Of a DNA stretch of 64,000 bases, positions 19,775 to 43,140 are shown in pieces. Location: the NCBI GenBank assembly GCA_965240325.2, contig OZ251228.1, forward strand, positions 2,232,001 to 2,296,000, read 5' to 3'. The notes below the pieces were generated by a model. It worked only from the letters and a program-made list of their open reading frames with translations, ran no database searches and was not told where the DNA came from. Position 1 is the first letter of the stretch. Every line of letters starts with the position of its first letter. Source of the DNA: Rebecca billardiae RCC1528. Its lineage: Eukaryota; Protista; Haptophyta. The position numbers and the translations under genes are program-made.

Positions 19775-19919
19775 CAGTGAGAGTTATATATCAGAGTAGT
19801 GTGAGACACCGAGACCGAGACACGCCGGGCCGGTGCGGCTGTAGCTATACAGTATGGGCGGGCGAATTCATGATGAAAACAATCGCGCGATAGAGAGAGA
19901 GAGGTCATATTACCGCGGG

Positions 19920-20828: not shown

Positions 20829-21785
20829 TACGGAAGGCTGGGTCTCGTCGAAAATCACGCGCTATTATGGGGGTACAACGCACTATAATTAAGAATAAGA
20901 GACGCACACAGCTCACGCAGGCGAGATACGCGAAAGCCGCCGCGCTCCCATTGCATGATGGCCGAATCGACTATGGGGCAAGGGCCCTTGTATGGCCAGG
21001 GGTATTGTGCACGTTAAATCATAGTAAACTGTATCGGTTCTTGAACCAGCATGCACAGGTTCAAGGTACTGCTAGATAATCTGCCCTGACGCTTTAGCTT
21101 GCGAACCAAGCCCCCCAAACGGGATGGCGAGCACTGGGCGACGAGAGGGCCCGCCTGCGCAGCGCTCCCAAGGCCGCATGCGGGCGTGACAGCCGTCCGC
21201 GGGCGCTTTGTGGGGGCAAGAAGACCCGTAGGCAGCAATCGCGCCGCCTCGTCGACGCCCTCGCCGCCCTCTCCGCGCGCAGAGACCTGCCGAATGGCAA
21301 GCGCAGTTCTGAAGAAGGCCTGTCCGACGAGCGTGATAGGCACGCGTGCGCCCCTGGGGCATCCAAAGGTCGCGCGGCTTTTTCGCTTCTGCGAGATGGG
21401 TATGGGTGTACTCAACATCACTGCTTCGCCGGCCGCCATGCCGACATCGATCAGACCGCACACACGCGCGCGACAGCTGGCAGGCCAACATCCGGTTGTG
21501 AATGGCGGCGCGCGTGATCACAAGGCTGTCGACGAGGAGACCGCAGTGCGAGCAAAAGTAGGGCGCGCAAGACATGCATCTCGGTCGTGAGGCGTGCATG
21601 AGCCGCGAGCACGGGCACGACTTGCACGACAAAGCCAGTCATGCGCCTCGACGCGCACGCGCCGCGGCGGCCCGACGAGCAGGGCGTGCGCAGGCTGGCC
21701 TTCTTGGCGGCGGCTGTCCGGGAGTGCCCGCGCACGCGCAAACTGTATTCAAAAAGCTCCCGGATGGCACAGGGGGTATACTCCC

Positions 21786-22203
21786 GCAGGCCCTCGCGGA
21801 GCTCGTCGAGCTGTGCGTGCGCGCGCGCGCGCGCGGCCCGGCGGACGAGGCCGTGGCGGTGCGCACGGCGCTCGCCCTCGTGCAGCGGCGGCGCGTGCGG
21901 CGCGCGAGGCGCATCCAGCACGAGTCCATGCTGCTCGCGCGGCTCACCGTGCTGCTCGCGGGACTGCCGCCCGTGCGCGCCTCGCGCGACGCCGCGATGC
22001 GCGCGGCGGGGCGCCTGCCCGAGGCGGTGCGCCTCCCGCTCTTCGACTTCCTGAACAACTCCCGCGCCTCCCATGCCATGCGCCTCGTGCAGCACGCGGA
22101 CGGCGGGGGCGCCGCCGGACGCGCCGCGGCTGATGGCCTACTCGACAGCGTCGAGCCCCGCTCACGCTGGGAGGCTCAGAGTCAGGCCAACGCACGCGCG
22201 TGA
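21786..22203 (+). pseudogene. 5'-truncated duplicate of the monooxygenase 3' end (19351-19774)
   Basis: Near-identical sequence from GCAGGCCCTCGCGGAGCTCG to the stop codon. All FAD motifs are missing. Confidence 0.92.
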
Positions 22204-22289
22204 CAGTGAGACACGCGGCCGGTGCGCGGCGCGGTACAGTATATGGGGCATGGCATGGGCGGGTCGCACGACGAATTCACAGACACTGA

Positions 22290-25106: not shown

Positions 25107-27970
25107 TGGCCCGCGGTGCAGGGCGGAGCGCGTAGCGTGGAGCCCCGCCGGGGGCCCTCACTACTACGTTGTCAAAAAGATCTTTTGATCAAAGAAAAGG
25201 GGACGGGGGACGATTTTTACGGTTGTTGGAGGGTGAGTTTTCGCTTTTTCGAGGGGTAGATAGCTCTCTATCGCAAGATGCGGTTGACGAAATAGGCGCG
25301 CCCGGACGTGAGTAATAAGAAAGATCGAAGGCCGCTGGCCGTCACTTTGTCAGTAAAGTTTAGTCATCGTGTCATCGACGCTATTGAAAACTTGGTCGCC
25401 GGTCCAAGGGCCGTATTGTTTTGACAAAGTGTGTTAGACTGAAGAAGAAGCGTGGGTGCTCCCTACCGCGCGTGTGGGCGATAGGTCCACCGGAAGCGAC
25501 CAGGCGGGCTAAGGACCGGCCCCGAAGGGGCAGGCGGACGGGGTCACATCATCGGATGATGGGTCAGGCAGCCCCAAACTCCCAGGGAGCAGTTTGGGGC
25601 TCCGGACTGGCCGAGATAGTGCCGGATCGTGCCTCCGCCGGTACGTGCGGGTAGATGCGGAAACTTACCCGCGACTCCTGTGGAACGGTGTCTTCGAGGA
25701 CTGGTGCCCAGTCTGACACTCCTCCTCACCGACCACAGCGAGGTGCGGTGCCTGAGTGCGCGTGCGCGTGTGCGTAAGTGTGAGTGGGGGCGTAAGGCGA
25801 GCGTGCGTGTGCGTGCCCGACTGTCTAGCTGCCAAGCTGTCCGGAAGCTGCGAATCGCAGCAGCGATCGAGGGACGTCTGGAGTTGCTCGCGAATCCGTC
25901 CGAGCAGTCGTACTCCAGTGAATGGACGCCTGCCGAGCTGGCTGACCAGGCTCGGGCTCGGCTTGGGCGTCGACGGGGGCGTGGTGCCCCAGGCAGTTGA
26001 TCGAGTGATCGTGTGGTCGTGCCAGCTGCTGTGGACTTACCGAGATCCACCTGCCTGCTCCTCCTCGATGGGTCGCGTCGACGGCGACGGTGCACCACCG
26101 CGTGTGGGCTGGTGCAATGGGACATGGACTGGTCTCACGCGTAGAACCTTGTGTCGGCTTCGGCCGCAGAATGACGCTGCCTCGCAACCGCGTGTCACGA
26201 AGAAGCTGCACATAGCGAGCGCGGAGATGATCGAGCGGCGCGCGGTGTCGATCGACGTGATCGTATCCGCTGTCGCCTAGTGAACGCGTAGATCGCGCCT
26301 CATCTCCTCCTTGCAAGCTGCTCGGCCATCTTGGCGGTCGAGGGCTGCATTCATGAAGTCAATCGACTTGGTGTCGAGACTCCTCCTGCATCTGAGCAGG
26401 GCGTGCGACTCGGCGCACGATGACGACGCGAATGTCGTCGGAATGAGGTACGTCAGCACCTCCTCCTTGAAGGCTGCCGCGGTTGGGCTAGCCTGCCTTG
26501 GACCATCCGACTTGGATGTGAATCGTCTCGCGAGCTCGCAACGCGCGATGCGCGCGAGCGCGTTCCTTGCGCCAGCGAGGTCGGGTCCGGTAACGAGCGC
26601 GTCTCGTTGCTGACCCCGATACCATGTTAGACTGAAGAAGAAGCGTGGGTGCTCCCTACCGCGCGTGTGGGCGATAGGTCCACCGGAAGCGACCAGGCGG
26701 GCTAAGGACCGGCCCCGAAGGGGCAGGCGGACGGGGTCACATCATCGGATGATGGGTCAGGCAGCCCCAAACTCCCAGGGAGCAGTTTGGGGCTCCGGAC
26801 TGGCCGAGATAGTGCCGGATCGTGCCTCCGCCGGTACGTGCGGGTAGATGCGGAAACTTACCCGCGACTCCTGTGGAACGGTGTCTTCGAGGACTGGTGC
26901 CCAGTCTGACAAAGTGCATGTGCATGGGTCATATACTACGACTGTTTCAAACTGCATGTCGGCGTACCGAGCGCGCTGTTTGCCGGTTTGCATTATTTTC
27001 CCGGCGCGCACGCCGACGCCGCCACCGCGGCTCGGCGGCCGGACTCATCTCGGCCCGCAGCGCTTGCGTCCCCCCGCGGCGGCGCGCGCCGCCGTCGCCG
27101 CCGCGCAGGCCGTGCACTCGGTGGATGAGGAGACGGCCCTGCTGCGCGCGGAGCGCTGCGCGCCGCGCGCTGCTCCTGCTGCGGCGCGCAGTAGTCCGCT
27201 CGTCCGCCCCGCGGGCTCGCCACGGAGCCGACGAGCGCGATGACGACAATCGAATGAGCACGAGTGCGCACGGAGGCGCTGGGCGCCGAGCTGGCGAAGC
27301 GCGGCGCCGAGCTCGACGCGCTGCGCGACGCGGCGACGGACGCGCTGGGCGCGCGCGGCGCCCTCGTCGCGACGCCCCGTGCAGCAGCTCGAGCAGCCAG
27401 CTGTGGAGTAGACGGCCGTCGACTCGAGGGCGCCACCGCGCCGGGTGAGTGAGCACGCACGGGCTCCGCCTCGGTCGGAGGCTGGCTGGCCGCCGCCGTG
27501 GCTTCGAGGCCGACGCGGCGGAGGAGGCGGCGGGCGAGCACGGTGGCGCGGTGGAGCAGGCGCGCACGCGCGGCGGCAGGCGCGACCCGCCGCTCGCCTC
27601 GTTCCACCCCGAGCTCCGCTCGGTCTCGCCTCTCGGTGCGCGGCTGCGCAGCGCCGTGAGCGCAGGCTGGGGCCGCTGGGGGTGGGGCCAGCAGAGTGGT
27701 GCGCGCTCTCGCTCTGCCGGCACGAGGCGCGCCGGCTGAGCGACCAGCGGCCCGTCGTCGAGCGCGTGGCGCAGCGCGAGCACCTCAAGGCAGGCTCGCC
27801 CTGCGCGCGCGCGCCGCTGCCCCGGCCGCCGTCCGTACTTCTTCGCGCGGGCCCGCGGCGACAGTCCTCATCGGCCCGCCATGTTGACCAGACTGAGACA
27901 GCAGCCGACGGAGGGTGCACCGCGGGCCCCTAACTACGTTGGTTCTACGGAAGGACCGCGGAACGCGGTC
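25107..27970 (+). mobile_element. Non-autonomous Helitron2-like element B
   Basis: 5' T-GGCCCGCGGTGCA with a 5' hairpin. Perfect subterminal inverse TGCACCGCGGGCC at 27916-27928. 3' hairpin GACCGCG-gaa-CGCGGTC at 27954-27970. Confidence 0.7.
25432..26911 (-). mobile_element. TRIM-like non-autonomous LTR retrotransposon (1480 bp)
   Basis: 287-bp LTRs at 25432-25718 and 26625-26911 (TG..CA), 5-bp TSD AAGTG, PBS TGGTATCGGGGTCA (rc 26611-26624), PPT GAGGAGGAG (rc 25719-25727). No intact gag or pol. Confidence 0.95.
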
Positions 27971-28062: not shown

Positions 28063-28091
28063 GGCATATGCGTCGTCGTCATTACCGCGGG

Positions 28092-28964
28092 CTAGGTCCA
28101 GCATGCGCGGCACGGCGGCTTGCCGTCCAACGCTTCCCAGCTGATGTTGACGCCGTCGGCGCAGCCGGGCGGCGCACACGGCTGACGGCGCACGTAGGGC
28201 AAAACATACTGCATCAGCACCGTCTGGACCGACAGGCCCGAGCGCGCAAGGTAGTCGGCGAGCACAGCCTCAGCGTCCTCGCGGTATGCAGCACCCAGGT
28301 GTCGGCGCAGCCCGTTGCGGAAAGTCAGGAGCCCAAAGTAGGTGTTCATCGCGCCGCGGTGGCCACCCAGTATCTGATCGTTCACGTGGTACGGCCACAC
28401 ACGCAGCCTGCCCGCGTGGGGTCGCTCGTTCCACCAGTTATTGCGGTTCGCCTCAGACGCAGGCACGCACAGCTTTTTGTTCGGAAGCCTCTCTAGCCAC
28501 TCGGGCTTGAGGACATGCCCGGGCCGGTACACCAGATCGATGCGGGCTTTCACGAGGAAGTCGCGCACTCTAGGCTGCGGCTGTGCCGAGCGCTCCCACT
28601 CGATGAGCGCGTCGTACGCGGCTCGCAGGTGTGCATACTGCGCATAGTAGCGCGACTCGCAGTAAGGGTGGCGGCAGATGCGGTGGTCGAAGCGCGATGC
28701 GTTGAGTGCCACCGTGATAGCCCGCTCGCGCACGACGACGGCCTCGAGCCCTGCGGCCGCCGCACGCGCATCGTCGAATGCGTGCAGCCAGACCGCAGTC
28801 TCGTTCGGCTCGGCCGCGACAACGAGTGCGCACGCGAAGCGTGCCGATAGAGGGGCAAGAATGTGCTCGGCGAGCTCGCCCGGAAAGTCAATGCTCGCTG
28901 GCGACACGTTTGGGGCGCGGTGCAGGAACGGGCCGGCGAGCAGCACCGCGACCGCCTTCGACAT
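28092..28964 (-). CDS. Hypothetical protein, possibly glycosyltransferase-like (copy 2 of 19920-20828)
   Basis: 290-aa ORF nearly identical to copy 1, with only in-frame indels. Confidence 0.7.
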   Translation of the reverse strand: MSKAVAVLLAGPFLHRAPNVSPASIDFPGELAEHILAPLSARFACALVVAAEPNETAVWLHAFDDARAAAAGLEAVVVRERAITVALNASRFDHRICRHPYCESRYYAQYAHLRAAYDALIEWERSAQPQPRVRDFLVKARIDLVYRPGHVLKPEWLERLPNKKLCVPASEANRNNWWNERPHAGRLRVWPYHVNDQILGGHRGAMNTYFGLLTFRNGLRRHLGAAYREDAEAVLADYLARSGLSVQTVLMQYVLPYVRRQPCAPPGCADGVNISWEALDGKPPCRACWT

Positions 28965-29661
28965 TACGGAAGGCAGGTCTCGAAAATCACGCGCTCGCGA
29001 AAGCCGCGCTCATCGCCGAATAACGGGAGTGAACCAGCATGCCGGTCGGAATTTCGGGTGATGGGGATTTCTTTTCCGAAATAAATGCATGCGCAGGTTA
29101 CCACTGCCGCCGTCAGCAGAGCAGCACCGGCCAAGCTCCAAGCTCCCGGATCCCCAGTGATGGCCGGCCAGTGCCCAGTGGCTGTCGTCTGCTATTTTGA
29201 GGTGTCAATGATAGCGGATCATGTTTGCGGAGCGCTTTGCGCACGCAGTTTGCGCTCATCGTTGTCGGAGAGGTGGTGCAGGTGGCACGGGAAGCGCCAC
29301 GGGCGCTAGCCGCCCGGGCCTGGTTGGAGGCCGTGCCGCACACTGCACAGCAGCGCGACCCCCGTGTCGGGCCCGTGCTTCTGCGCCATCGCGCACGCCT
29401 CCGGGAAGGCGGCAGCTGCTTGCCGAGCGTGCCGATGTGCGGCTGGCAGGTCCCAGTCAGAGTCGGTGCCGCGGTGAGTGGAGGGGCGCCGGTCGACTTG
29501 AGCGGAACAGGGGCATGCATGAAACGGTGAAGTCGAGCGCGGTGAAAACCTTCTGCCGTGCCCGGTGGCGTCTCGGCCCGATGCCGGCGCTCGCTCGCAC
29601 GAAAAGCTCGTCGGGATGACCGCCGGGAGATCATCACGACCAGCCACGCTTCACGGCTTCA

Positions 29662-31458
29662 TCAGCCTGCACCGTCGCGGACCGGGACCCTCCTGGCCAT
29701 CACCACAGGTATGTCCTGTGGTTGCTGCCGCGGTGCTGCTCCTGCCGCCATCGATGGTGACGGTAGTGCTGGTAGACCCTGGTCGTAGATGCCATGGGCA
29801 GCCCGGATTGCGTTGTCACCTGCGTTGCCGGGCAGATGCTGCGCGTCCAGGACCCAGGCACCATCATTGACCACCCCGTCGTCAACCGAATGGATCGTGC
29901 CATCTGGCAAGCGCCAGCGGACGATGCTGACAGCGACCAGCGGCGGCGGTGGGGAAAGCTGCGGCGCGGCGTCCGAAACAGCGGCAACGCAGCTGGTGGG
30001 TTTGTGCTGTCGCTTCGCTGCGCGCGTGCCCTGGTCGCCGGTGCCATGCCCCAGCCTTCGCTTGAGGACGGCGAGCCGACGGTTCACCATTCCGGCCAGC
30101 TTGTGCGTGGCGCAACGGCTGACGCGCGCGTCGCCCGGCATGCCGAAAGTAGGCCGTGCGGTGCAGCCCGCGTGATCACACTTGCGGCTCCTCACGTCGA
30201 CCATGCCGGCCAGCTTGTGCTCAGCGCACCGGCTGGCGCGCGCGTCGCCCGGCATGCCAAACGAAGGCACCTTGGTGCAGTCAGCGTGATCACACTTGGG
30301 GCTCCTCACGTCGACCATGCCGGCCAGCTTGTGCGTGGCGCAACGGCTGACGCGCGCGTCGCCCGGCATGCCGAACGAAGGCCGCTTGGTGCAGTCAGCG
30401 TGATCACACTTGGGGCTCTTCACGTCGACCATGCCGGCCAGCTTGTGCGTACCGCACCGGCTGGCGCGCGCGTCGCCCGGCATGCCGAACGAAGGCTGCG
30501 TGGTGCAGCCCGCGTGGTCACACTTGGGGTGCTTCACGTCGACCATGCCGGCCAGCTTGTGCGTACCGCACCGGCTGGCGCGCGCGTCGCCCGGCATGCC
30601 GAACGAAGGCACCTTGGTGCAGTCAGCGTGATCACACCTGGAGCTCCTCACGTCGACCATGCCGGCCAGCTTGTGCGTGGCGCACCAGCTGGCGCGCGAG
30701 TCACCCGGCATGCCGAAAGAAGGCACCTTGGTGCAGCCCACGTGATCACATTCGGGGCTCACCACGTCGACCATGCCGGCCAGCTTGTGCGCAGCGCACC
30801 GGCTGGCACGCACGTCGCCCGGCATGCCAAACGAAGGCCCCTTGGTGCAGTCAGCGTGATCACACTTGGGGCTCCTCACGTCGACCATGCCGGCCAGCTT
30901 GTGCACTGCGCACCGGCTGGCGCGCGCGTCACCCGGCATGCCGAAAGAAGGCACCTTGGTGCAGTCAGCGTGATCACACCTGGGGCTCCTCACGTCGACC
31001 ATGCCGGCCAGCTTGTGCGTGGCGCACCAGCTGGCGCGCGAGTCACCCGGCATGCCGAAAGAAGGCACCTTGGTGCAGCCCACGTGATCACATTCGGGGC
31101 TCACCACGTCGACCATGCCGGCCAGCTTGTGCGCAGCACACCGGCTGGCACGCACGTCGCCCGCCATGCCAAACGAAGGCTGCGTGGTGCAGCCCGCGTG
31201 ATCACACTTGGGGTGCTTCACGTCGACCATGCCGGCCAGCTTGTGCGTAGCGCACCGGCTGGCGCGCGCGTCGCCCGGCATGCCGAAAGAAGGCACCTTG
31301 GTGCAGCCCACGTGATCACATTCGGGGCTCACCACGTCGACCATGCCGGCCAGCTTGTGCGCAGCGCACCGGCTGGCGCGCGCGTCGCCCGGCATGCCAA
31401 ACGAAGGCCCCTTGGTGCAGCCCGCGTGACCACACTTGGGGTGCCTCGCGTCGACCAT
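29662..31458 (-). CDS. EsV-1-7 cysteine-rich repeat protein, 12 repeats (copy 1)
   Basis: 38-aa unit VDVxxPxCDHxxCTxxPSFGMPGDARASRCxxHKLAGM matches the EsV-1-7 motif (C-x4-C..P.FG..C-x2-HK..M.DV). First ATG downstream of the transposon is 31458. Confidence 0.88.
   Translation of the reverse strand: MVDARHPKCGHAGCTKGPSFGMPGDARASRCAAHKLAGMVDVVSPECDHVGCTKVPSFGMPGDARASRCATHKLAGMVDVKHPKCDHAGCTTQPSFGMAGDVRASRCAAHKLAGMVDVVSPECDHVGCTKVPSFGMPGDSRASWCATHKLAGMVDVRSPRCDHADCTKVPSFGMPGDARASRCAVHKLAGMVDVRSPKCDHADCTKGPSFGMPGDVRASRCAAHKLAGMVDVVSPECDHVGCTKVPSFGMPGDSRASWCATHKLAGMVDVRSSRCDHADCTKVPSFGMPGDARASRCGTHKLAGMVDVKHPKCDHAGCTTQPSFGMPGDARASRCGTHKLAGMVDVKSPKCDHADCTKRPSFGMPGDARVSRCATHKLAGMVDVRSPKCDHADCTKVPSFGMPGDARASRCAEHKLAGMVDVRSRKCDHAGCTARPTFGMPGDARVSRCATHKLAGMVNRRLAVLKRRLGHGTGDQGTRAAKRQHKPTSCVAAVSDAAPQLSPPPPLVAVSIVRWRLPDGTIHSVDDGVVNDGAWVLDAQHLPGNAGDNAIRAAHGIYDQGLPALPSPSMAAGAAPRQQPQDIPVVMARRVPVRDGAG
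30088..31455 (-). repeat. 12 x 114-bp coding tandem repeat
   Basis: Counted from the translation. Confidence 0.97.
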
Positions 31459-31502
31459 GCTGGCCAGCGTGTGCGCAGCGCAGGGCTCCTCCGCTCCTGT
31501 GC

Positions 31503-32618
31503 CAAGGGGAGTCAGGGTACAGCACGTCCAGTTGGGCTGCAGCTGGAGCTTGGGTCCAAAAGCTTCCCGCGGCGCAGCGGCACTCGCCGCCGCCGCCGCC
31601 GTCGAGGGGCGGTGTGGCGCGCACGGCGTGAGCCGCTGCGGGCGCTGAGGTGCGCGCGACGGCGGCGCGCCCGGCGGCGCTGCTGTAGGAGGCCACTGCC
31701 CTCCTCTCTGCCCCGCGCGCTTCGCTCGTCGTCGCCGTCTCCGCGCCTGCGACCAGCGCGCACGCGAGCGCCGCACCGCCCGGCAGCAGGGGCAATCTCA
31801 GCCGTGACTGCGCATGTGCGTCGCGACCTGGTCGGCCCAGCGCGCGAGGCGCGTGCGGGCGAGGCAGGGCCAGTGTGGCCGCGCGCTATGCCGCCTGCAC
31901 CTTGCGCCAGTGGGCATGTCGCGGGCCTTGCACCTCTGTCGACAACGTTGACAAACAATGCGGCACCCAAGCGCAGACGTCAGTGTGCACGATCGAGACA
32001 GTAGGCGTACAGACGCGATAGTTGCAGAGCCTTTTGTGATCATGTGAGTCATGTATCGTCAGTGACTCTCGCCCAGGTCGTCTGCGCGCTGACGTTTTGA
32101 CTGAGTGCCTCAAGATCGCCTCGACGATGGCCCGTGCATTGCTTGAACACTCAACACAGTCCAAGCGGCCAACCAGACACACGTGCTCAGTTCCCTGTTG
32201 TACGCTCAGATGGGCTTACTTGAGGCGGCATGGCGCGCGGCCACACTGGCCCTGCCTCGCCCGCACGCGCCTCGCGCGCTGGGCCGACCAGGTCGCGACG
32301 CACATGCGCAGTCACGGCTGATATTGCCCCTGCTGCCGGGCGGTGCGGCGCTCGCGTGCGCGCTGAGTCGCAGGCGCGGAGACGGCGACGACGAGCGAAG
32401 CGCGCGGGGCAGAGAGGAGGGCAGAGGCCTCCTACAGCAGCGCCGCCGGGCGCGCCGCCGTCGCGCGCACCTCAGCGCCCGCAGTGGCTCACGCCGTGCG
32501 CGCCACAACCGCCCCTCGACGGCGGCGGCGGCGGCGAGTGCCGCTGCGCCGCGGGAAGCTTTTGTACCCAAGCTCCAGCTGCAGCCCAACTGGACGTGCT
32601 GTACCCTGACTCCCCTTG
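31503..32618. mobile_element. Second 1116-bp foldback DNA transposon (inverted relative to 22819-23934), 7-bp TSD CCTGTGC
   Basis: Same termini as copy 1. CCTGTGC lies at 31496-31502 and 32619-32625. The empty site is seen in the paralogous locus near 39107-39113. Confidence 0.96.
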
Positions 32619-32652
32619 CCTGTGCACCGCGCCGCTGAACAAGTCAAGGGAG

Positions 32653-32740
32653 AGCTTACGTACGTTTGTTGCTCTGCTGTGTGCCAACCTCGGCAACCTC
32701 GACATTCCTCGACATTCCTCGACCTTCCTCGACAACCTCG
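32653..32740 (+). repeat. ~70-bp direct repeat (partner 34561-34631) containing 9-10-bp GRCAACCTC/GACATTCCTC iterations
   Basis: GTACGTTTGTTGCTCTGCTGTGTGCCAACCT-GGCAACCTCGACATTCCTCGACATTCCTCG occurs at both sites. Inverted iterations at 35483-35522. Confidence 0.9.
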
Positions 32741-32858
32741 TTGACGGAGCTCGTCTTGTATTTGTCAGTAGGGAAATGCGAGGATTCCCCCGGGAACAAC
32801 GAGCACCTCCGTGCCGCTTGTCCGTCCCGTCCCACCCGGCCGATCCAACCCGGAGACC

Positions 32859-34103
32859 ATGACGACGCGCGCAACGACCAGCGAGCCGAAGAAGCCGTCG
32901 GCGGACGCCCCCCAGGAGCCGCGGGCGACGAAGTCGCAGAAGACGAACGCCACGTCCGACGTCGCCGGCGATGGCGGCGTCACCTCGGACGGGTTCGGCA
33001 CGTCGAACCCGGCGTCGGGCGGCCGTGCGCACGGCGGCGCGTGCGGCAAGCGCCCAGCAAGCGAGTGCCCGCAGGCGGAGACTGCCACGGGCGCTTCGAA
33101 GAAGCGCAATGCCGCGCCCGGCCTCGCTGCCGACGACGCCATCGGCATGCAGTCGCCTGCTGGCAGCACGTCGGCCGGCGGAAGCAAGGAGCCGCTCCCA
33201 CCGGCGGCGCAGGCGGTGCAGGACAAGATGCTGAAGCAGGTGTGCGCCGGGCGTGCGCCGCGCGCGCGCACGCTGCCTTGTGCGTCGGCGCTGACCCACC
33301 CCGCACCGCGCATCGCCTGCGCCGTTCAGGCCGAGGCGATCAACCGGCTCGCGCAGCAGCGCGCCAAGGCGCTGGAGAAGGCGACCGAGCTGAAGCAAAC
33401 GTCGGTGTCGCTCGGCCCGCCGGCGAACACGTCGTCGTTCGCGCAGGACCACGTCGAGCGCTGCGCGGACAAGAGCAACATCCGCGTGAACATCGGCGCG
33501 CAGATGCCGACGAAGCTCACGTTCGACGTGCGCCGCCAGGTGGTGTTCGGCGTGTACGACGTGGTGCACCAGGAGGGCGTGCCGGGCGCCGAGGCCATGT
33601 TCAATGAGGGCAAGCACGTGAACAAGAACGGCGAGCAGCGCAGCTTTCTCTACAACGAGGCGCCGTCCATCGAGTACGTGCCGGTGGCGGATGAGGACGA
33701 GCAGTACCGCGTGCGCGTGCGCGCCATCGTGTTCGAGCCGCGCTCGCGCCTGATGGCGGGCCACATCCTGGAGGGCATCAAGACGGCGCCGCTCGGCTTT
33801 GCGCCCATCGTGGGCACGCTCCCGACGGTGGACGAGGTCGACCTGAACATCCCGATCGCGCGCCGCCACTCGCTGATGGCGTTCTACGACGTGGACGGCG
33901 AGGCGTTCGACATCTTCGGCGACGACCTCAAGTTCTACATCAAGGCCATCGAGGCGCTGGCGGTTCAGGCTGGCGCCAGCGTGCTGCAGATCGTGCGCAC
34001 GCCGATCGAGACGCAGATGCACTTTGGCGGAGACATCGTGCTGGCCTGCAAGGTGACGACGGCGATCCGTGCTGAGCTGGGCGTGGCGATCACGGGCATG
34101 TGA
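32859..34103 (+). CDS. Hypothetical protein; probable in-frame intron 33240-33329
   Basis: Strong GC3 bias, disordered N-terminus and globular-looking C-terminal ~250 aa. Intron CAG|GTGTGC..GCTGAC..TTCAG|. Confidence 0.75.
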   Translation: MTTRATTSEPKKPSADAPQEPRATKSQKTNATSDVAGDGGVTSDGFGTSNPASGGRAHGGACGKRPASECPQAETATGASKKRNAAPGLAADDAIGMQSPAGSTSAGGSKEPLPPAAQAVQDKMLKQVCAGRAPRARTLPCASALTHPAPRIACAVQAEAINRLAQQRAKALEKATELKQTSVSLGPPANTSSFAQDHVERCADKSNIRVNIGAQMPTKLTFDVRRQVVFGVYDVVHQEGVPGAEAMFNEGKHVNKNGEQRSFLYNEAPSIEYVPVADEDEQYRVRVRAIVFEPRSRLMAGHILEGIKTAPLGFAPIVGTLPTVDEVDLNIPIARRHSLMAFYDVDGEAFDIFGDDLKFYIKAIEALAVQAGASVLQIVRTPIETQMHFGGDIVLACKVTTAIRAELGVAITGM

Positions 34104-34563
34104 GACGGCTGGCAAGACTGTGTGCGGGTGGGTGGGAAGGGGGTCGAGCACGGGTGGGTGGGAAGGGGTTCGGGTGGGCACGTGGGCCCGCAGTCGGTGA
34201 TAGGCCCCGCATGCACCGCCGAAGCGGTGTGCGTGTTGCAGCACGCACGGCCGATGCTGCAGCACAGTGACTGCGTGATCGGATAGAATACGACGTCAAG
34301 TATGATTTTTAGGGCGCGTGCCGCGCATAGACCGAATGGTGCACAGCGCCGGCGTGCACTAGCCTGGGGCTGGCAGGCGTCGTCCAGGCGGGAATGAATA
34401 CGTCATTATTCTCGCAGTTATTATTTCAGCTCCGCGCCTTGATCCTTGACGATTTTCCAAGCTCGGAGTCGGAGGATCAGCAACATCATCCTCAAGCGTT
34501 CTGCGACCTAGGAATCTAGGATCAGCGCAACATCGTCAAACGTGCTGAGACCTAGGTAGCAGC

Positions 34564-35367
34564 TTATATGTACGTTTGTTGCTCTGCTGTGTGCCAACCT
34601 AGGCAACCTCGACATTCCTCGACATTCCTCGGATCGTACACGACGAGCTTGGCAGCGCCGGGGATGGCCAGCACAGCGTGCAGCTGAGCTCGCGTGCAGT
34701 CATGCGCCTCGTCGAGCAGCACCAGATCGAAGCGCGTGTCGCGTTTGGCGTAGTCGAGTTGGTACAGCTTGAAGAGCACAGCATGCGTCCGTGCGGCATG
34801 TGAGCTGGGGTCCGCCTGGCGCTCCCACACGCGGCGCGCCGAGGCAAGAACAGCGCCGCGGCACCGGGCAAGCGCGGGCAGGTGCGCGTCGCAGAGGTGC
34901 GCGTCGGCCGATGATAGAAACGCACGCAGCGTCGCGCGCACGTCCGTCAAGCTGTCGTCGTCCGGCGCGTCACACGGAAGCACAGCCACCTGGTCGGCGA
35001 TGTGGCCGCCGTGCAGGGCATGCGTCGCCTCGAAAGCCAGAGCGTCGAGCGTGCACACGCGCACGTGCGCCATCGCGGAGCACAGCTCAGCCTGCTCCGC
35101 TGCCGCGCTGCGATTGAACGTCACGAGAACGGTGCGCAGGTGCGGTCGCGCCGCAGCGAACGCGCGCAGCGCGTGTGACTTGCCGGCACCTGCAACGGCG
35201 AGAATCTTCATCACATCACCGCGCTGCAGGGCGGTGTGCACGATAGCCTCGAGGCTGCCGGGTGGATCGTGGCGAACGAGAGCATGCAGCAGCACGCTCG
35301 ACGTCGGGCGTGCGAGCGGAGCGGCAGCCAATCGGCGTCGGCGCGGGCGCGCCGGCCCGGGCGCCAT
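34564..35367 (-). pseudogene. Truncated SF1 (UvrD/FBH1-like) helicase, N-terminal ATPase half only
   Basis: Walker A KILAVAGAGKS, motif Ia VTFN, TLDALAF, LFKLYQL, Walker B FDLVLLDEAHD. Motif III VVYDP is cut off at the 34561-34631 repeat. Confidence 0.85.
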
Positions 35368-35644
35368 GCAGTAGCCTGCGGTTGGCGCGTTCAGCTGAGC
35401 CAAATCGAAGCGGCGGGCGTGAAGGTGGGTTCCGGTGAGGTGGTTCCCCCACGTCGCGATGAGCACGCTCGCCACCGGACTTTGCCGAGGTTGTCGAGGT
35501 TGCCGAGGTTGTCGACGTTGGCGAAAACGTAGCAACCGACCCATCCGACCTCAAAGGTATTGCCTTCGGCTTGGCTGATCCCCTTCATTCCTTTGGCTGA
35601 GTCAAGCAAGGGCGCTTCCCGGGATCCTGCCACACGCTCCCGAA

Positions 35645-35677
35645 AGCAATGCCCCCCCCCTGGGGGGGGGCATTGCT
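35645..35677. other. Perfect 16-bp-arm palindrome AGCAATG-C9-T-G9-CATTGCT
   Basis: Directly visible. Confidence 0.9.
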
Positions 35678-35810
35678 ACCGGACTGGCGCGGGCCGTAAT
35701 CAAATGTACCCGCTTGAAATAGAGGAAGCCCATTTCAATAGGAACGCGGTTCGATTTGGCGTATGACCAGTGCGGGGAACGCCCCTGGTGTCCGGAGGGA
35801 GTCTCAAAAT

Positions 35811-35944
35811 TCGAAACTCGGTCTCCTTCAGCCCTGAAAATCGTCCCCCGTCCCTTTTTTCTTTGATCAAAGATCTTTTTGAACGTGGTTCGGGCCCGCT
35901 GGTGCGGGCTCCAGGCTGCGCGCTCCGCCCTGCACCGCGGGCCA
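35811..35944 (-). mobile_element. 5' end of a third Helitron2-like element (family of element B)
   Basis: Reverse complement matches 25107-25245 (GGCCCGCGGTGCAGGGCGGAGCGCG..TCAAAAAGATCTTT..GATCAAAGAAAA..GGGACGGGGGACGATTTT). No matching 3' end found. Confidence 0.7.
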
Positions 35945-36090
35945 GCAATAATAAAACCGTGCTGACTCCTTATTGTCTCCACGGTTGTCCTTTCCCCGTT
36001 CCCGTTTCCGTCGCACCCCTCGGCCTCGCCTAGCGACTAACTACTAACTAAGCGAGGGGTGCTCGATGACCCAAATGTTCTACTTGACTA

Positions 36091-36275
36091 CTATGATTTA
36101 CCGACACGTAGTAGGTAGGACGGCGCAGACTGTCTCCTGATTCGTCGTCGGCAGTGCCCGATCGTCTGACACGAAGTCGACGCTGGTGGTGCCAGAGCAT
36201 AGCCTGAACGAGTGAACCGCGCAATCAAATGGCTTGAGCGCGGCGGCCTTGAGCTGCTGGAGCGCAATCCACCTG
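36091..36275 (-). repeat. Dispersed repeat, copy 2
   Basis: Inverted homology to 8341-8507. Confidence 0.8.
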
Positions 36276-37492
36276 CGCTGCGCGGCTCGCATCCGTTACT
36301 TACTACTCGGGAGATTAGCAGACTTGTGCACGACCTGAAAATTTGCGGATATATATGTGGCGTTATAACGCAGTTATAACCGAATGTGTCGGGAGGCTGG
36401 AAGGTGATGCGTCGCAGTGTCGTGACAGCCAAGGCCAAGGGCCTCCATCGTCTACCTGATCCTGCAGGTAGTTGCTTCGTGCTGGTACGGCGCTCGAGAT
36501 CATATCCAAGATCATCTGCAGTCATCCGAGTGGCAGCTTTCCAGTTCATCAAGCAACTAACCAGTCGAGCTCACACAAATCGGCACTTTACGACCTTTCG
36601 CGCCGAGCTCACAAGCTGCTCATCAGTTACTGCCAGTCGGCCCCTTGCCTCATCATCAGCAAACGAGGCCCCATCTCCTTCGCCGTCGCGTGCTTCTTTG
36701 CTCGTGCTCGCTCGCTCGTTTGGGGACCTTGCTGCCACACGCTGGCGCAGTCTGCGCGCAGCTTTGGCACCGTCGGCTCAGTCGCTCTTCCCGTCATCCA
36801 GGGACAAATCCCCACCTCACACAAGTATATATACACATCGATTGGCGCCGCTTCAATCTTTGTGCAGGAGGACACATATATATATATATATATATATGGG
36901 GATTAGTCTTTTCCGAAAATGAGCAGGTTATTGCCACTGCCGCCATTGACGTCAGCAGAGCAGCACCGGCCAAGCTCCCGGATCCCCCGTCGGGCGGCCA
37001 GTGATGGCCGGCCAGCGGCTGTCGTCTGCTATTTTGAGGTGTCAATAGCGGATCATGTTTGCGGAGCGCTTTGCGCACGCAGTTTGATGCGCTCATCGTC
37101 GTCGGAGAGGTGGTGCAGGTGGCACGGGAAGCGCCAGGCGCCAGCCGCCCGGGCCGGGTTGGAGGCCGTGCCGCACACTGCACAGCAGCGCGACCCCCGT
37201 GTCGGGCCCGTGCTTCTGCGCCATCGCGCACGCCTCCGGGAAGGCGGCAGCTGCTTGCCGAGCGTGCCGATGTGCGGCTGGCAGGTCCCAGTCAGAGTCG
37301 GTGCCGCGGTGAGTGGAGGGGCGCCGGTCGACTTGAGCGGAACAGGGGCGTGAAACGGTGAAGTCGAGCGCGGTGAAAACCTTCTGCCGTGCCCGGTGGC
37401 GTCTCGGCCCGATGCCGGCGCTCGCTCGCACGAAAAGCTCGTCGTGATGACCGTCGGGAGATCATCACGACCAGCCACGCTTCACGGCTTCA

Positions 37493-39067
37493 TCAGCCTG
37501 CACCGTCGCGGACCACCCTCCTGGCCATCACCACAGGTATGTCCTGTGGTTGCTGCCGTCGTGCTGCTCCCGCCGCTATGGATGATGACGGTAGTGCTGG
37601 TAGACCCTGGTCGTAGCTGCCATGGGCAGCCCGGACTGCGTTGTCACCTGCGTTGCCGGGCAAGGCGGACAGGTGCCGCTCGTCCAGGGCCCAGGCACCA
37701 TCATTGACCACCCCGTCGTCAACCGAATGGATCGTGCCATCTGGCAAGCGCCAGCGGACGATGCTGACAGCGACCAGCGGCGGCGGTGGGGAAAGCTGCG
37801 GCGCGGCGTCCGAAACAGCGGCGAAGCAGCTGGTGGGTTTGTGCTGTCGCTTCGCTGCGCGTGTGCCCTGGTCCCCGGTGCCATGCTCCAGCCTGCGCTT
37901 GGGGACGGCAAGCCGAGTGTTAACCATGCCGGCCAGCTTGTGTTCAACGCACCGGCTGGCGCGCGCGTCGCCCGGCATGCCGAATGAAGGCGCCTTGGTG
38001 CAGTCAGCGTGATCACACTTGGGGTTCTTCACGTCGACCATACCGGCCAGCTTGTGCGTACCGCACCGGCTGGCGCGCGCGTCACCCGGCATGCCGAACG
38101 AAGGCCCCTTGGTGCAGCCCGCGTGGTCACACTTGGGGTTCTTCACGTCGACCATACCGGCCAGCTTGTGCGTACCGCACCGGCTGGCGCGCGCGTCACC
38201 CGGCATGCCGAAAGAAGGCACCTTGGTGCAGTCAGCGTGATCACACTTGGGGTGCTTCACGTCGACCATGCCAGCCAGCTTGTGCGTAGCGCACCGGCTG
38301 GCGCGCGCGTCGCCCGGCATGCCGAAGTAAGGCACCTTGGTGCAGCCGGTGTGATCACACTTGGGGCTCTTCACGTTGACCATGCCGGCCAGCTTGTGCA
38401 CTGCGCACCGGCTGGCGCGCGAGTCACCCAGCATGCCGAAAGAAGGGTGCTTGGTGCAGCCTGTGTGATCACACCTGGGGCTCCTCACGTCGACCATGCC
38501 GGCCAGCTTGTGCGTGGCGCACCAGCTGGCGCGCGAGTCACCCGGCATGCCGAAGTAAGGCGCCTTGGTGCAGCCGGTGTGATCACAATTGGGGTGCTTC
38601 ACGTCGACCATGCCGCCCAGCTTGTGCGTAGCGCACCGGCTGGCGCGCGCATCGCCCGGCATGCCAAACGAAGGCCACTTGGTACAGCCCGCGTGATCAC
38701 ACTTGGGGCTCACCACGTTGACCATGCCGGCCAGCTTGTGCGTAGCGCACCGGCCGGCGCGCGCGTCGCCCGCCATGCCAAACGAAGGCTGCGTGGTGCA
38801 GCCCGCGTGATCACACTTGGGGCTCTTCACGTCGACCATGCCGGCCAGCTTGTGCGCAGCGCACCGGCTGGCGCGCGCGTCGCCCGCCATGCCAAACGAA
38901 GGCTGCGTGGTGCAGCCCGCGTGATCACACTTGGGGCTCTTCACGTCGACCATGCCGGCCAGCTTGTGCGCAGCGCACCGGCTGGCGCGCGCGTCGCCCG
39001 GCATGCCAAACGAAGGCCCCTTGGTGCAGCCCGCGTGACCACACTTGGGGTGCCTCGCGTCGACCAT
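37493..39067 (-). CDS. EsV-1-7 cysteine-rich repeat protein, 10 repeats (copy 2)
   Basis: Same 38-aa unit and same C-terminal tail as copy 1. First ATG is 39067. Confidence 0.88.
   Translation of the reverse strand: MVDARHPKCGHAGCTKGPSFGMPGDARASRCAAHKLAGMVDVKSPKCDHAGCTTQPSFGMAGDARASRCAAHKLAGMVDVKSPKCDHAGCTTQPSFGMAGDARAGRCATHKLAGMVNVVSPKCDHAGCTKWPSFGMPGDARASRCATHKLGGMVDVKHPNCDHTGCTKAPYFGMPGDSRASWCATHKLAGMVDVRSPRCDHTGCTKHPSFGMLGDSRASRCAVHKLAGMVNVKSPKCDHTGCTKVPYFGMPGDARASRCATHKLAGMVDVKHPKCDHADCTKVPSFGMPGDARASRCGTHKLAGMVDVKNPKCDHAGCTKGPSFGMPGDARASRCGTHKLAGMVDVKNPKCDHADCTKAPSFGMPGDARASRCVEHKLAGMVNTRLAVPKRRLEHGTGDQGTRAAKRQHKPTSCFAAVSDAAPQLSPPPPLVAVSIVRWRLPDGTIHSVDDGVVNDGAWALDERHLSALPGNAGDNAVRAAHGSYDQGLPALPSSSIAAGAARRQQPQDIPVVMARRVVRDGAG
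37925..39064 (-). repeat. 10 x 114-bp coding tandem repeat
   Basis: Counted from the translation. Confidence 0.97.
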
Positions 39068-39190
39068 GCTGGCCAGCGTGTGCGCAGCGCAGGGGGCTCC
39101 TCCGCTCCCGTGCACCGCGCCGCTGAGTCAAGGGAGTGCCATCGGCTTGGCTGAGTGCACGCGCCGCCGCCCGCCGTCGTCTTCGGCCAC

Positions 39191-39923
39191 ATGGCGGCGA
39201 GCGACGCCATCCTGTACGAGGTCTTCCTCCACGGCGCCGAGTGGAGCACCGCGGCGGGCAGCGCCGAGGAGCTCGCCGAGGGCATCGGCTCGCTCGGCGC
39301 GGGCGAGGGCGAGCTCGTGCCCGCGCGAGCGCCGCCGCCGGCGCCGCCGCTGCGCGGCGCCGCGCTGCGCGTGTGGCGGCTCGATCCGGCCGCGCTCGTG
39401 TCCGTGGTCGTGGACGCGAGCTCGGCCGCCGACGCGGCGCGCGGCGTGCTGGCGTGGGTGCGCGCCGCGCTCGCGCTCGCCCGCTCGCCGCCGCCGCCCG
39501 CCCTCGTGCGCGCGCGGCGCGACGCGGCCGATTGGCAGCTGGCCGTGTCGGCCGGCGCGGAGGTGGTCGCGCTCGTGCGGCACCACGCCGTCTCGCTGCA
39601 TGAGCAGCAGGACAACTACTCGACGATCGCCGCGATCGCGCCGCTGCCGCCCGACCGCCGCCCCTCGCTCCGGCTGAGCGCGTGGGCGACGGACGCGAGC
39701 GCGCTCGCGGTCGCGGGCTCGGACGCGTCGGTGCGACTGATCGAGCGGCGCGGCGCGCTGCTCTGCGCGCTCGACGGCGGCGAGTGGGGGCTGCGCGCGC
39801 GCGGCGGGCTGGTGGCGCTCGCGCTGCGCGCGCTGCCCGCCGGGCGCGGGCTGCTGCTCCACGTGCTCTCGTCCGACGGCTGGCTGCAGCTGCTGCACAT
39901 TGCGTGGGCGGTGCCGGAGGGCT

Positions 39924-39963
<40 letters not shown>

Positions 39964-42577
39964 CACCGCTGGCGGCGGCGGGCCGGCGGGCGCGGCGCCG
40001 GCCGCTGTGTGCGCGCTCGGCGGCGCGCGCGTCGCGCCACCCGGCTGCGCCGCGTGCGCCCTCGAGCTGATGGCGCCGCGGCACGGCGCGGGCGGCGCGG
40101 GTGGCGCGGCCGAGGGTGCCGGCGCTCCCGCGGGCGCTGCGCTCGACGCCGGTGCGACGGACGTCGCCGACGTGTCTGACGTCGTCGTGGGCGGCGCCGC
40201 CGCGGACGGCGCGCCCCTCGTCGCCGTGTGGCGCGCGCACGTGCTGCGCCCGCTCGGCGCGCGCGGCGCGGCGGCGCCGCGAGGCGGCGCGGCGGCGCGC
40301 GTGCGCGTGGTCGCACTGGCGAGCACGGCGGATGCGCGCACGGGGCGCAGCGCGGCGGCGTCGGCCGAGCTGCTCGGGCGCGCTGCCGGCGGCGGCGAGG
40401 ACGCCGTCGCGCCGGTGCACTGCGTGCGCGTCTCTCCGTCGGGCGAGCGCGTCGCGTGCCTCGACACGGCGGGCTCGCTCTGCGTGTGGCGATACGCGCA
40501 CCCGCCGGCGCCGGCGCGGCTCGCGGGCGGCGCGGGCGCGCGCGCGGGCGGCGGCGACGGCGACGGCGGCGAGGAGGACGGCTCGGCGTCGCTCACGCTC
40601 GAGGTCTCGATGCCCGCCCCCGCGCCGGGGCCCGCCCCCGCGCCCGCCCGCCCCTGCGCCGTCTCCTTCTGGTCCGAGACCGCGCTGATCGTCGGCCGCA
40701 CGGACGGCACAGTGAGTGTGTGCGCGCCTCCAGACTCTGCGAATCTGCTCGGCGACGCGCCGGAGCAGCTGGCGCCGGGCGGCGTGGCGGCGCTGACGAG
40801 CGCGCACGACGGCGCCTTCTTCTGCCTCGAGCGCGAGCGCGCGTGGCGACGCCACGCCTCGCGCGCGCGCGAGGCTGCGTGGGGCGGGCGGCGCGGCGCG
40901 CTCGGCGCGGCGCGCGCGGCCGCGGCGCGCGCCGTCGCCGCGCTGTGGTTCGCGTGCGCCACGCTGCTGCGCTGGGCGCTCGCGTGGGCGGTGGCGCTGC
41001 CGGCGGCGTCGGCGCCGGGGCTGGTCCCCGTCGACACGTACCGCCTGCTCTCCGTGCGGCGCACCTCCGCCGCGCTCCTCTTCGAGCGCCGGCTGCGCGC
41101 GCGCGACTGGGCGGGTGCGCTGCTGCTAGCGCGCGCGTACGGGCTGGGCGCGGACCCGGTGTATGAGGCGCAGTGGGCGGAGCTGAGCGGGGCGAGAGGG
41201 TGGGCGAGGGCGCCGGGCGAGGCGGGCGCGGTGGGCGCCGCGGCGCACACGCCGCCGGCGCACGCGCCGCCCCTCAGCGCCGCCGCCGTCGCCGCCGTCC
41301 TCGAGCCGCTGCGCTGCGCGCGCGCGGCCGTGCGCGCGTGCTTGGGCGCGGTGCCGCCGAGCGCGGCCGAGGCGCGCGCTCTGCTCGAGTACGCGCGTGC
41401 GCGGTGCGTGCGCGCGCTCGAGGCGAGCGAGCGCGAGGCGCGCGCCGGCGCGGCCGAGCCCGACGCCGACGAGACGCCGGCGGCGTGGCGCGCGCGGCTG
41501 CGCGCCGTGCGCGCCGCCGCGCGCCGGCTGGCCACTTTCGAGGCGATGATGGCGGCGGCCGCGGCGGACGGCGGCGGCGCCGAGGGCGGCGGGCTGGCAC
41601 CCTTCGACGCCGCCGCGTTCCTCCGCTTCCGCGACGCGCCGATCGCGCTCTCGCTCGGCGCGGCCGCGCGCGCCGCAGACCTGCGCACCCTCCGCCTGCT
41701 CTGGGCCCGGCACGCGACGCGAGAGCTGTCACTCGGCGCACAGCTGGAAGCGCTGGCGCAGCTGCCCGCCGTCACGGAGGCGGAGGCGGTGCGCGAGCTG
41801 CTGCCGCGCGTGCGCGCGCGCGCGCCGCGCCGCCGTGGGCGCGCGCGCGCGCGCGCCGAGGCCGAGTCCGACGCGAGCGAGGCGGAGGCCGCGGACGCGG
41901 ACGCGGCGGCCGCGCCGGGCGCGGACGGCGCTTCAGGCTCGAGCGAGGGCGGCGGCAGCGAGGCGGAGGGTGCGGCGCCGGCCGCGGCGGAGCGGGCGGC
42001 GGAGGCGAGGGCGGAGGAGGCGGAGCGCGCGCGCGCCGTGTGCGCGTGGGCGTGCGAGCGCGCGCGCGCCGTCGAGGCGCGCACGGGGCTCGTCGACCAC
42101 GCCCTCGCCCTCGTGCACGCCGCACTGACGCAGGAGGACGCGGCGAGCCGCGCGGCGGAGCGCGCGGCCGATGGCTCCGGTGGCGCGGCCGCGCGGTCCG
42201 CGCTGGACGAGCTGCGCGCGCTGGGCTGCACACTGAGCGAGCTCGCCTTCCTGGTGTACCGGCAGACGGCGGCGGGCGCGGCGGCGGACGGCGGTGCCGA
42301 TGGCGCTGAGGGCGGCGGCGGCGCTGACGACGACGACGACGACGACGACGCGTACAGCGCTGAGCACCGCCCGAGCGTTGGCCTCGGCGCCGCCGCCTCA
42401 GCCTCCGCCGCTCTGGAGTGGCGGCTGTGCTTGTACGAGCGACTGCAGCCGGGCGCGCGCGCGCACGCGCTGCTCAGCTCGTGCGACGCGAAGGCTGAGC
42501 TCGGCTTCGTGCTCGCTGAGCTGCTGCCGCCGCTGCTCGCGCGCGCGGCGGAGGGCGCGGCGGCGGGCGCGGCGGCG

Positions 42578-42639
<62 letters not shown>

Positions 42640-43063
42640 GGAGCGCTCGCGCCGGCTCGCGTCCGCCGCCGTGGACGTGCTGGCGGCCGCGCTCGCGCCG
42701 CGGCCGCGCGCGCCCGAGGTCGGCGCCGGCGCCGGCGCCGGCGCGCACCCGCCTGTGCCCGCCGCCGCGGACGAGGGCGGCGCGGAGGAGGAGGAGGAGG
42801 CGGCCGCGCTCCGGCGGTGCCGCTGGCTGGTCGCACTGGCGCGCGCGCCCGCCGCCGAGCACGCCGCGCTGCTGCCGCTGCTTGGCGGCGGCGAGGGCGC
42901 GGCGGGGATGCGCGCGCGCGTGGCGTCCGTCGTGCTCTCCGCTCTGTACGCCACATCGAGCGCCCACGCGCGCGCCGTCGACGCGGTCGTCGCCCTCGCC
43001 GCCGAGCTGCCCGCACTGCTGCCAGACGGTGGCGGTGGCGGTGGCGGTGGCGGTGGCGGTGGC

Positions 43064-43140
<77 letters not shown>

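Follow-up and report, generated by a model that had tools for sequence, protein, structure and literature searches.

Site-specific diversification of paired EsV-1-7 repeat arrays in the haptophyte Rebecca billardiae suggests a candidate modular DNA-recognition domain

EsV-1-7 proteins form a family that has expanded in algae and giant viruses, with members in tandem clusters, and that, according to published statements, is absent from land plants. In the published view EsV-1-7 is a possible new zinc finger, and its member IMMEDIATE UPRIGHT (IMM) is a developmental regulator whose mechanism is not established. The searchable EsV-1-7 papers, a set outside which the original 2017 IMM paper (Development 144:409) falls, describe no ligand, no hypervariable sites and no nuclease fusion. 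Here we analyzed a window of 64,000 nucleotides from Rebecca billardiae RCC1528 (contig OZ251228.1, positions 2,232,001 to 2,296,000), which contains two related genes, A and B, that encode long EsV-1-7 arrays. As in the IMM family, the units are arranged in tandem, have 38 residues with the pattern C-x4-C-x16-C-x2-H and are accompanied by no other Pfam domain; the tail of the window proteins, in contrast, is an orphan, an IMM-type N-terminal domain is missing and the units are unusually homogeneous. Because the scaffold is almost frozen, hypervariable positions of the specificity type stand out. The best-supported mechanism is that the arrays act as sequence-specific DNA readers, to which we assign a probability of roughly 0.55.

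Tandem Repeats Finder (TRF) placed the arrays at 30086-31482 (12.3 copies of 114 bp, 88% matches) and 37923-39091 (10.3 copies of 114 bp, 90% matches), within minus-strand open reading frames (ORFs) at 29662-31776 (A) and 37493-39115 (B). The first ATG of both ORFs (31458 in A, 39067 in B) corresponds to M1 of unit 1 and is directly preceded, in both genes, by a common 44-bp leader, a partial unit remnant (..PCAAHTLAS; 31459..31502 on the minus strand in A). The 106 residues of ORF A before this ATG were judged unlikely to be coding, as residues 1-91 lie in a repeated element of 1.1 kb and the others are the partial-unit leader; the element upstream thus creates a spurious N-terminal extension. 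The probable coding sequence of gene A is 29662..31458 on the minus strand, with 12 units of 114 bp at 30091..31458 and a 142-aa tail at 29662..30090. For gene B it is 37493..39067 on the same strand, with 10 units of 114 bp at 37928..39067 and a 144-aa tail at 37493..37927. The gene products are therefore likely to be proteins of 598 and 524 aa, respectively, each composed of array, basic linker and tail. In tail A, the basic linker (MVNRRLAVLKRRL...AAKRQHKP, ~29998-30090) is followed by an orphan region of ~110 aa and the stop codon.

The Pfam profile PF19114 (EsV_1_7_cys) matched gene A in 12 stretches (E 8e-173, 560.4 bits) and gene B in 10 stretches (E 6.3e-143, 464.7 bits), the cutoff being 25 bits, and by these profile matches genes A and B are new members of the known EsV-1-7 family. 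The pattern C-x4-C-x16-C-x2-H was found in 22/22 units with an exact period of 38 aa, and all putative zinc ligands were intact (88/88). Both arrays are basic, with a pI of ~9 and 55-64 K+R residues versus 30-44 D+E. The tails, which share 89% protein identity, differ by a proportion of synonymous differences (pS) of 0.106 and of nonsynonymous differences (pN) of 0.042, and the pN/pS of ~0.4 indicates moderate constraint on the tail in this comparison. No Pfam match was obtained for the tails and no homologue in a search of 5.8 billion proteins or in the Atlas, and BLAST revealed no relation between them and the array homologues. A first-pass annotation made from the letters of the window had already recognized two paralogues with 12 and 10 units of 114 bp, the spacing of the putative ligands and the EsV-1-7 family, and the TRF arrays, the fit of every unit and the profile search bear all of this out.

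Variation among the 22 window units was strongly uneven. With the M of MVD counted as position 1, positions 16-17 (the variable pair in CT-xx-P) read KG, KV, TQ, KV, KV, KG, KV, KV, TQ, KR, KV, AR in array A and KG, TQ, TQ, KW, KA, KH, KV, KV, KG, KA in array B. Codon 17 reached a nonsynonymous diversity (piN) of 0.605 at a synonymous diversity (piS) of only 0.04, with seven amino acids encoded by seven codons (GGG, GTG, CAG, CGG, TGG, GCG, CAC). Codons 5 and 33 (piN 0.40 each) and codon 6 (0.34) came next; over all codons together, piS was 0.158 and piN 0.101. About 35 synonymous changes were placed on the unit tree, and scaffold codons such as 20, 24, 27 and 38 showed several synonymous changes and zero replacements, which points to purifying selection on a working protein and not to pure homogenization. 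When replacements were counted by parsimony on the maximum-likelihood unit tree, with the synonymous rate as expectation, 11.5 were observed versus 2.8 expected at codon 17, 11 versus 3.6 at codon 6 and 8 versus 3.3 at codon 5. A tree-free test gave the same picture: six colinear pairs of A and B units differed at 34 nucleotides, and codons 17 and 6 accounted for six of these differences apiece (0.9 expected for each, P = 2.4e-4 each).

The dipeptide lists and the seven second codons given in the first-pass annotation were exact, and its statement that variation concentrates at the CT-xx-P pair was confirmed. An even spread of variation, which it had named as evidence against its proposal, was not seen; replacement counts exceed the synonymous rate at codons 17 and 6. 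Its description of the scaffold as almost invariant even at synonymous sites, in contrast, did not hold, given the synonymous diversity and the number of synonymous changes reported above.

The same positions vary across the family. A protein search returned at least 547 PF19114 proteins from metagenomes, Effrenium, Coccomyxa and brown algae, the best of them with only 42-64% identity to the window proteins. Diversity between units of the same protein was calculated from 74 proteins with at least five strict units (435 in total; grouping by identity of the consensus unit gave 54 lineages). Over the 54 lineages, positions ranked in the order 17 > 6 > 19 > 5 > 37, 32, 33, 3, and this profile correlated with that of the window (Spearman 0.68). 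Very homogeneous foreign arrays (P0050, P0059, P0070, P0099 and others) differed between units almost only at positions 3, 6, 17 and 19. Two of these proteins, P0050 and P0059, agree in scaffold and nuclease but have different residues at position 17 in four of five units. Compared with the viral relatives, position 19 was not variable in the window units, and positions 5 and 33 varied instead. Three viral orthologues of 413 aa each, from contigs of 26% guanine plus cytosine (GC) content and with a tree dS of 0.16, gave an omega of 3.6 at position 17 and 2.3 at position 6, compared with 0.19 in the remaining array and 0.14 in their C-terminal nuclease domain. In nine other close protein pairs, position 17 differed in 25/40 aligned units versus 28% overall (P 8e-6).

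A further estimate was obtained from 19 independent arrays of the IMG/VR database, many on GVMAG-named contigs, using unit pairs with at least 80% nucleotide identity, equal array weights and bootstrapping (global pS 0.162, pN 0.102). In these giant-virus arrays pN exceeded the global pS at three codons only, namely 17 (omega 2.27, confidence interval (CI) 1.67-3.17), 19 (2.12, CI 1.41-3.08) and 6 (1.83, CI 1.35-2.49), and the ratio was ~1 or less at the other codons. The alphabets at these hot spots were restricted to S/N/H/D at 6, R/I/Q at 17 and T/N/S/V/I at 19. Position 17 covaried with no other position (z 2.3 for 6 versus 17). Positions 3 (D/N) and 6, in contrast, covaried strongly (z = 11 against within-protein shuffles), N3 going mostly with D6 or S6 and D3 with N6 or H6 over all arrays, which suggests a direct contact between them. 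Thus, the combination of a homogeneous scaffold with hypervariable residues, as reported by the first-pass annotation, is real, exceeds the synonymous rate and is general to EsV-1-7 arrays, being replicated in independent arrays of other organisms and not peculiar to this locus.

For the structure of the unit, a four-unit AlphaFold2 (AF2) model was built on 93 aligned segments, without metal. The four putative ligands C9, C14, C31 and H34 were invariant in these segments. The model was of good local confidence (predicted local distance difference test score, pLDDT, 84), with the unit-to-unit arrangement uncertain (predicted template modelling score, pTM, 0.52). According to DSSP it contained zero helices, and short bridges linked residues 20-21, residue 30 and residues 2'-3' of the next unit. 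As residues alternate on bridged strands, 17 and 19 may share one exposed sheet face of the modelled array with 3' and 5' of the next unit.

An indication of what the arrays bind came from the domains to which they are joined. Relatives from giant viruses and metagenomes join 4-12 EsV-1-7 units to a C-terminal Vsr / homing-endonuclease-like domain, as in the loci L001:8001-9242, L004:3001-4242 and L005:2103-3344 and further in L006-L085. This conserved domain of ~175 aa, with the motifs RPD, IxExDExQH and FIRxNPD in this order, was common to 105 of the 120 best homologues. Its profile matched 7,733 clusters among 1.84 billion representatives (5,403 at E 1e-10) and, in IMG/VR, no fewer than 575 loci; EsV-like units lay upstream of it in 126 of the 146 best clusters, and the number of units scaled with protein length. 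In the searchable papers, no description of an array joined to a Vsr / homing-endonuclease-like domain was found.

The domain was modelled with AF2 at a pLDDT of 87.5 and a pTM of 0.82, and its leading Foldseek matches were all PD-(D/E)xK nucleases (McrC, BstEII, Hjc, R2 endonuclease, BanI, SfsA). The best VIA-align match was the catalytic domain of the homing endonuclease I-Bth0305I (Z 8.5, 95/97 residues), followed by the DUF559-like NGO0050 (Z 7.5) and Vsr (Z 7.4), where Z values of 7-8 are to be read as moderate and only moderately above the background of the aligner. A search of the domain's sequence profile against Protein Data Bank (PDB) sequences returned nothing. Given the uniformity of the matches and the conserved acidic/histidine motif, a nuclease fold is a reasonable reading of this domain.

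Five relatives, P0009, P0046 and P0103 (Effrenium voratum), P0016 and P0052, lacked the common C-terminal domain. In the tails of the Effrenium proteins, P0016 and P0052, Vsr/DUF559-like motifs were read by eye (EFLGNYYHG, EFHGDFWHG, EYDGNYYH; EFxGxxxHG), and one relative with such a tail is named Vsr endonuclease by its source; Pfam gave no significant match for these tails. On the evidence of the motifs, they would be a second, independent nuclease partner of the array. The clearly cellular members from brown algae and Coccomyxa carry low-complexity tails rich in Q/A/P with K-R-x-R motifs. A further fusion has been published: in Ectocarpus, a TcMar-2 (Tc1/mariner) transposase acquired an N-terminal EsV-1-7 domain (2025; PMC12477816). 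As a separate observation, some units of P0003 and P0005 also matched the Pfam family PF24906 (Zf_WRKY19; E 6e-9 in P0003), which hints at a link between EsV-1-7 and a plant zinc-finger domain.

Homing-type nucleases and transposases need a DNA-targeting module, and in these proteins the array is the only candidate for it, which supports DNA targeting. For the proposal of the first-pass annotation that the window proteins are nucleic-acid binders, the nuclease fusions and the published transposase thus provide indirect support, while the lack of a nuclease in the window proteins speaks on the other side. The fusions also bear on the choice of nucleic acid. Binding of RNA in the manner of PUF, PPR or CCCH modules, with one unit per one or few nucleotides, would fit a small, basic, repeated module with restricted polar alphabets at positions 6 and 17. 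The structures closest to the fused domain, however, are those of enzymes acting on DNA (I-Bth0305I, Vsr and restriction enzymes), the transposase fusion likewise points to DNA, and an RNA-related domain was seen in no relative, so that we regard RNA as an improbable ligand.

If the arrays read DNA, each 38-residue unit would be a small zinc-knuckle module, with C9, C14, C31 and H34 as putative ligands, on a basic scaffold. Purifying selection would keep this scaffold, while a few fixed positions would diversify between units and paralogues, foremost 17 and 6, followed by 5 and 33 in the window and by 19 in the viral relatives. The array would lie along the DNA and read a long site, specificity resting on contacts made by the hypervariable residues, and new combinations would be produced by gain, loss and conversion of units in a minisatellite-like array with a 114-bp period. 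Arrays of this kind would direct the C-terminal Vsr / homing-endonuclease-like nuclease of giant viruses. The window genes would have lost, or would never have had, the nuclease domain and would carry instead the basic linker, which resembles a nuclear localization signal, and the orphan tail; their products may be nuclear DNA-binding proteins, either regulators or site occupiers.

Several observations weigh against DNA reading by the window proteins. The nuclease domain with its RPD, ExDExQH and NPD motifs is absent from them (hhalign of tail A against the nuclease profile gave a probability of 0.2), and we infer DNA targeting from the fusions, an argument that reaches the window genes only via the homology of the arrays. 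In the searchable papers there is no direct evidence for binding of DNA, RNA or zinc by any family member. Variation at position 6 may be partly structural, given its covariation with position 3. Foldseek found nothing at or below E 1e-3 in the PDB for the four-unit model, and the array sequence profile found nothing among PDB sequences. Even in a wide VIA-align search the best Z was 2.7, the matches being RING domains (Z 2.1-2.7) far below significance. For a helix-free unit of this kind, with no significant counterpart in the PDB, known structures offer no model of how DNA would be bound.

The RING matches, weak as they are, would fit a reading of the arrays as scaffolds for protein-protein interactions, comparable to ankyrin, FNIP or LIM/RING-type repeats, whose hypervariable surface evolves in host-virus conflict. 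Repeat families that have expanded in giant viruses frequently bind proteins, and hypervariable positions on the surface are a general feature of binding repeats, whatever the class of ligand. A protein scaffold would not account as readily for an array whose fusion partner is in almost all cases a homing-endonuclease/Vsr-like nuclease, with the number of units as the main variable, and which also occurs on a transposase, as both enzymes need DNA targeting. We therefore consider protein scaffolds unlikely, if somewhat less so than RNA binders.

Further points against DNA reading concern the locus itself. A read search for expression with 28900-30320 yielded, in one run, only short contigs of 90-97% identity, which represent paralogues or relatives, and nothing in two sister runs. 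The ATG of gene B is ~120 bp from that of a divergent NBAS-like gene, and upstream of gene A lies the repeated element, so that the promoters are uncertain. A synonymous site in codon 12 changed six times on the unit tree, and gene conversion between units inflates such counts; because of this recombination homoplasy, the Poisson P values of the unit tree were not taken at face value and the replicated tests were relied on. Finally, three of the six minimal steps between codon-17 alleles could be CpG transitions. The outcome of the read search and the recombination homoplasy, together with a region full of repeats and of helitron-like or inverted-repeat elements and with the ease by which long ORFs arise at 70% GC, would be in line with variation that has no meaning, i.e. 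with gene copies that decay or are not expressed, in a segmentally duplicated region rich in transposons, and in which 6 and 17 are simply the least constrained positions and the counts are inflated by gene conversion and CpG mutation. Decay is, however, difficult to reconcile with the complete set of zinc ligands, with scaffold codons that accumulate synonymous changes and no replacements, and with the constraint on the tail. Moreover, the replacement excess recurs at the same codons in viral arrays with bootstrap intervals that exclude 1, and as these arrays are AT-rich, CpG mutation is no explanation for the hot spots. Meaningless variation is accordingly an account to which we give little weight.

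The history of the gene pair is reflected in a segmental duplication, with copy 1 at 29111..31502 (gene A plus ~550 bp of 3' flank) and copy 2, which contains gene B, at 36950..39113. In self-BLAST, 29111-31254 aligned to 36950-39091 at 90%, and 30314-31502 to 37923-39113; the homology of copy A to copy B ends at 31502, where the 1.1-kb element begins. The 3' flank had 2.6% mismatches, and 29331-29730 was almost identical between the copies. This mosaic points to gene conversion and limits the use of a simple molecular clock. A and B do not differ in unit 1, and mutual nearest units were colinear (A3/B2, A5/B6, A8/B8, A9/B9, A11/B10), the colinear pairs having a pS of 0.06-0.12, close to the value of the tail. 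Recent copies within arrays were A2/A4/A7 and B2/B3. Both arrays thus go back to one ancestral array, with later gain, loss or conversion of single units.

The GC content is ~70% throughout the window and 65-70% around the gene pair, which matches its surroundings. Adjoining gene B, an intronless plus-strand ORF at 39155-48310 (3,051 aa) gave weak Nbas_N and Sec39 matches; it has ~84% GC and long Ala/Gly runs, no homologue was found in a search with its first 700 residues, and its first ATG (~39191) is the one that lies close to the ATG of gene B on the opposite strand. An intronless NBAS/Sec39-like ORF beside the gene pair marks the window as cellular DNA of eukaryote type. Location of the pair inside an integrated giant virus was ruled out by this cellular neighbour together with the matching GC content. 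A search with Rfam gave no match.

The 1.1-kb element that abuts the 5' end of gene A (31503-32618) has inverted ends of 397 bp, perfect or near-perfect, and a second copy, 96% identical, at 22819-23934; it could be a foldback or miniature inverted-repeat transposable element (MITE)-like transposon. On the other side of gene A, a 0.9-kb segment (28081-28995), which includes a 290-aa minus-strand ORF (28092-28964) with no Pfam match, is duplicated at 19909-20863 (94%). Through these two duplications, the sequences on either side of gene A are found again 8-9 kb upstream. Between genes A and B, a minus-strand ORF of 326 aa (34564-35544) showed weak P-loop helicase matches in Pfam (AAA_30, AAA_19, Viral_helicase1; E 2e-4 to 2e-3) and may be a transposon helicase fragment. 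In addition, a short tandem CCTCGACATT was present at 32697-32734 and 34607-34631, and near-identical direct repeats at 19350-19782 / 21785-22211 (97%) and 25432-25718 / 26625-26911 (100%).

The EsV-1-7 family, to which the developmental regulator IMM belongs, ranks with the largest gene families of brown algae and is also common in giant viruses. Two family-wide statements emerging here were not found in the searchable literature: three fixed positions outpace synonymous sites, and a homing-endonuclease-like nuclease usually has the array as its partner. Modular reading of DNA by the arrays would explain IMM-type regulators, would imply a large class of viral site-specific nucleases and would offer the design of DNA binders a new scaffold; otherwise, the site-specific diversification of the family calls for a different explanation. 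Taken together, and as a tentative proposal that we hold with considerably less confidence than DNA reading as such, EsV-1-7 arrays might be an unrecognized class of modular, evolvable DNA-recognition domain, in which each unit would read a short DNA step via positions 6, 17 and 19 (5, 32 and 33 being auxiliary) with a restricted alphabet. Giant viruses would use these arrays as natural homing-type zinc-finger nucleases, and algal hosts would keep nuclease-less arrays as regulators or as blockers or repressors of viral or transposon sites, in an arms race like that of KRAB zinc-finger proteins with transposons.

Among known systems, the giant-virus array-nuclease proteins (P0050, P0002, P0005 and many on GVMAG contigs) are homologous to the window arrays (42-58% identity) and share with them the unit length and the fast positions 17 and 6; the window genes differ in having no nuclease and in their cellular context of ~70% GC beside an NBAS-like gene. 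Similarity to I-Bth0305I (EDxHD family) and to Vsr / DUF559 endonucleases belongs to the C-terminal domain of these relatives and not to the window genes. The first-pass annotation had likened the arrays to transcription activator-like effectors (TALEs) and to PRDM9; the shared pattern of variation stands, whereas the helix-free predicted fold is unlike that of TALE or C2H2 repeats. Its further proposals of a TALE-like code with one base per unit, of reprogrammability and of a nuclear localization signal drew no support from the analysis. TALE repeats are likewise near-identical units with variation at one or two residues each, but they are helical hairpins of 33-35 aa without metal ligands and with the repeat-variable diresidue at 12-13, whereas the window units have a period of 38 aa, Cys/His ligands, no TALE Pfam match and variable sites (6 and 17) that lie 11 residues apart and do not covary. 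The C2H2 arrays of PRDM9 and KRAB proteins also consist of minisatellite-like tandem units whose number and order shift between recent paralogues, and in them, too, purifying selection maintains the scaffold and a few fixed residues show an excess of replacements. The C2H2 arrays differ in the ligand pattern (C-x2-4-C-x12-H-x3-5-H) and in unit length (38 aa in the window versus 28 aa), no beta-beta-alpha helix was predicted for the window units, and no zf-C2H2, KRAB or SET match was obtained with Pfam. Both a C2H2 finger and a TALE-like fold were ruled out for the unit by the helix-free model and the lack of a significant Foldseek, VIA-align or profile match. In its evolutionary logic, the system nevertheless appears to resemble the PRDM9 / KRAB C2H2 arrays, with the viral relatives as a likely counterpart of natural zinc-finger nucleases, more closely than it resembles the TALEs.

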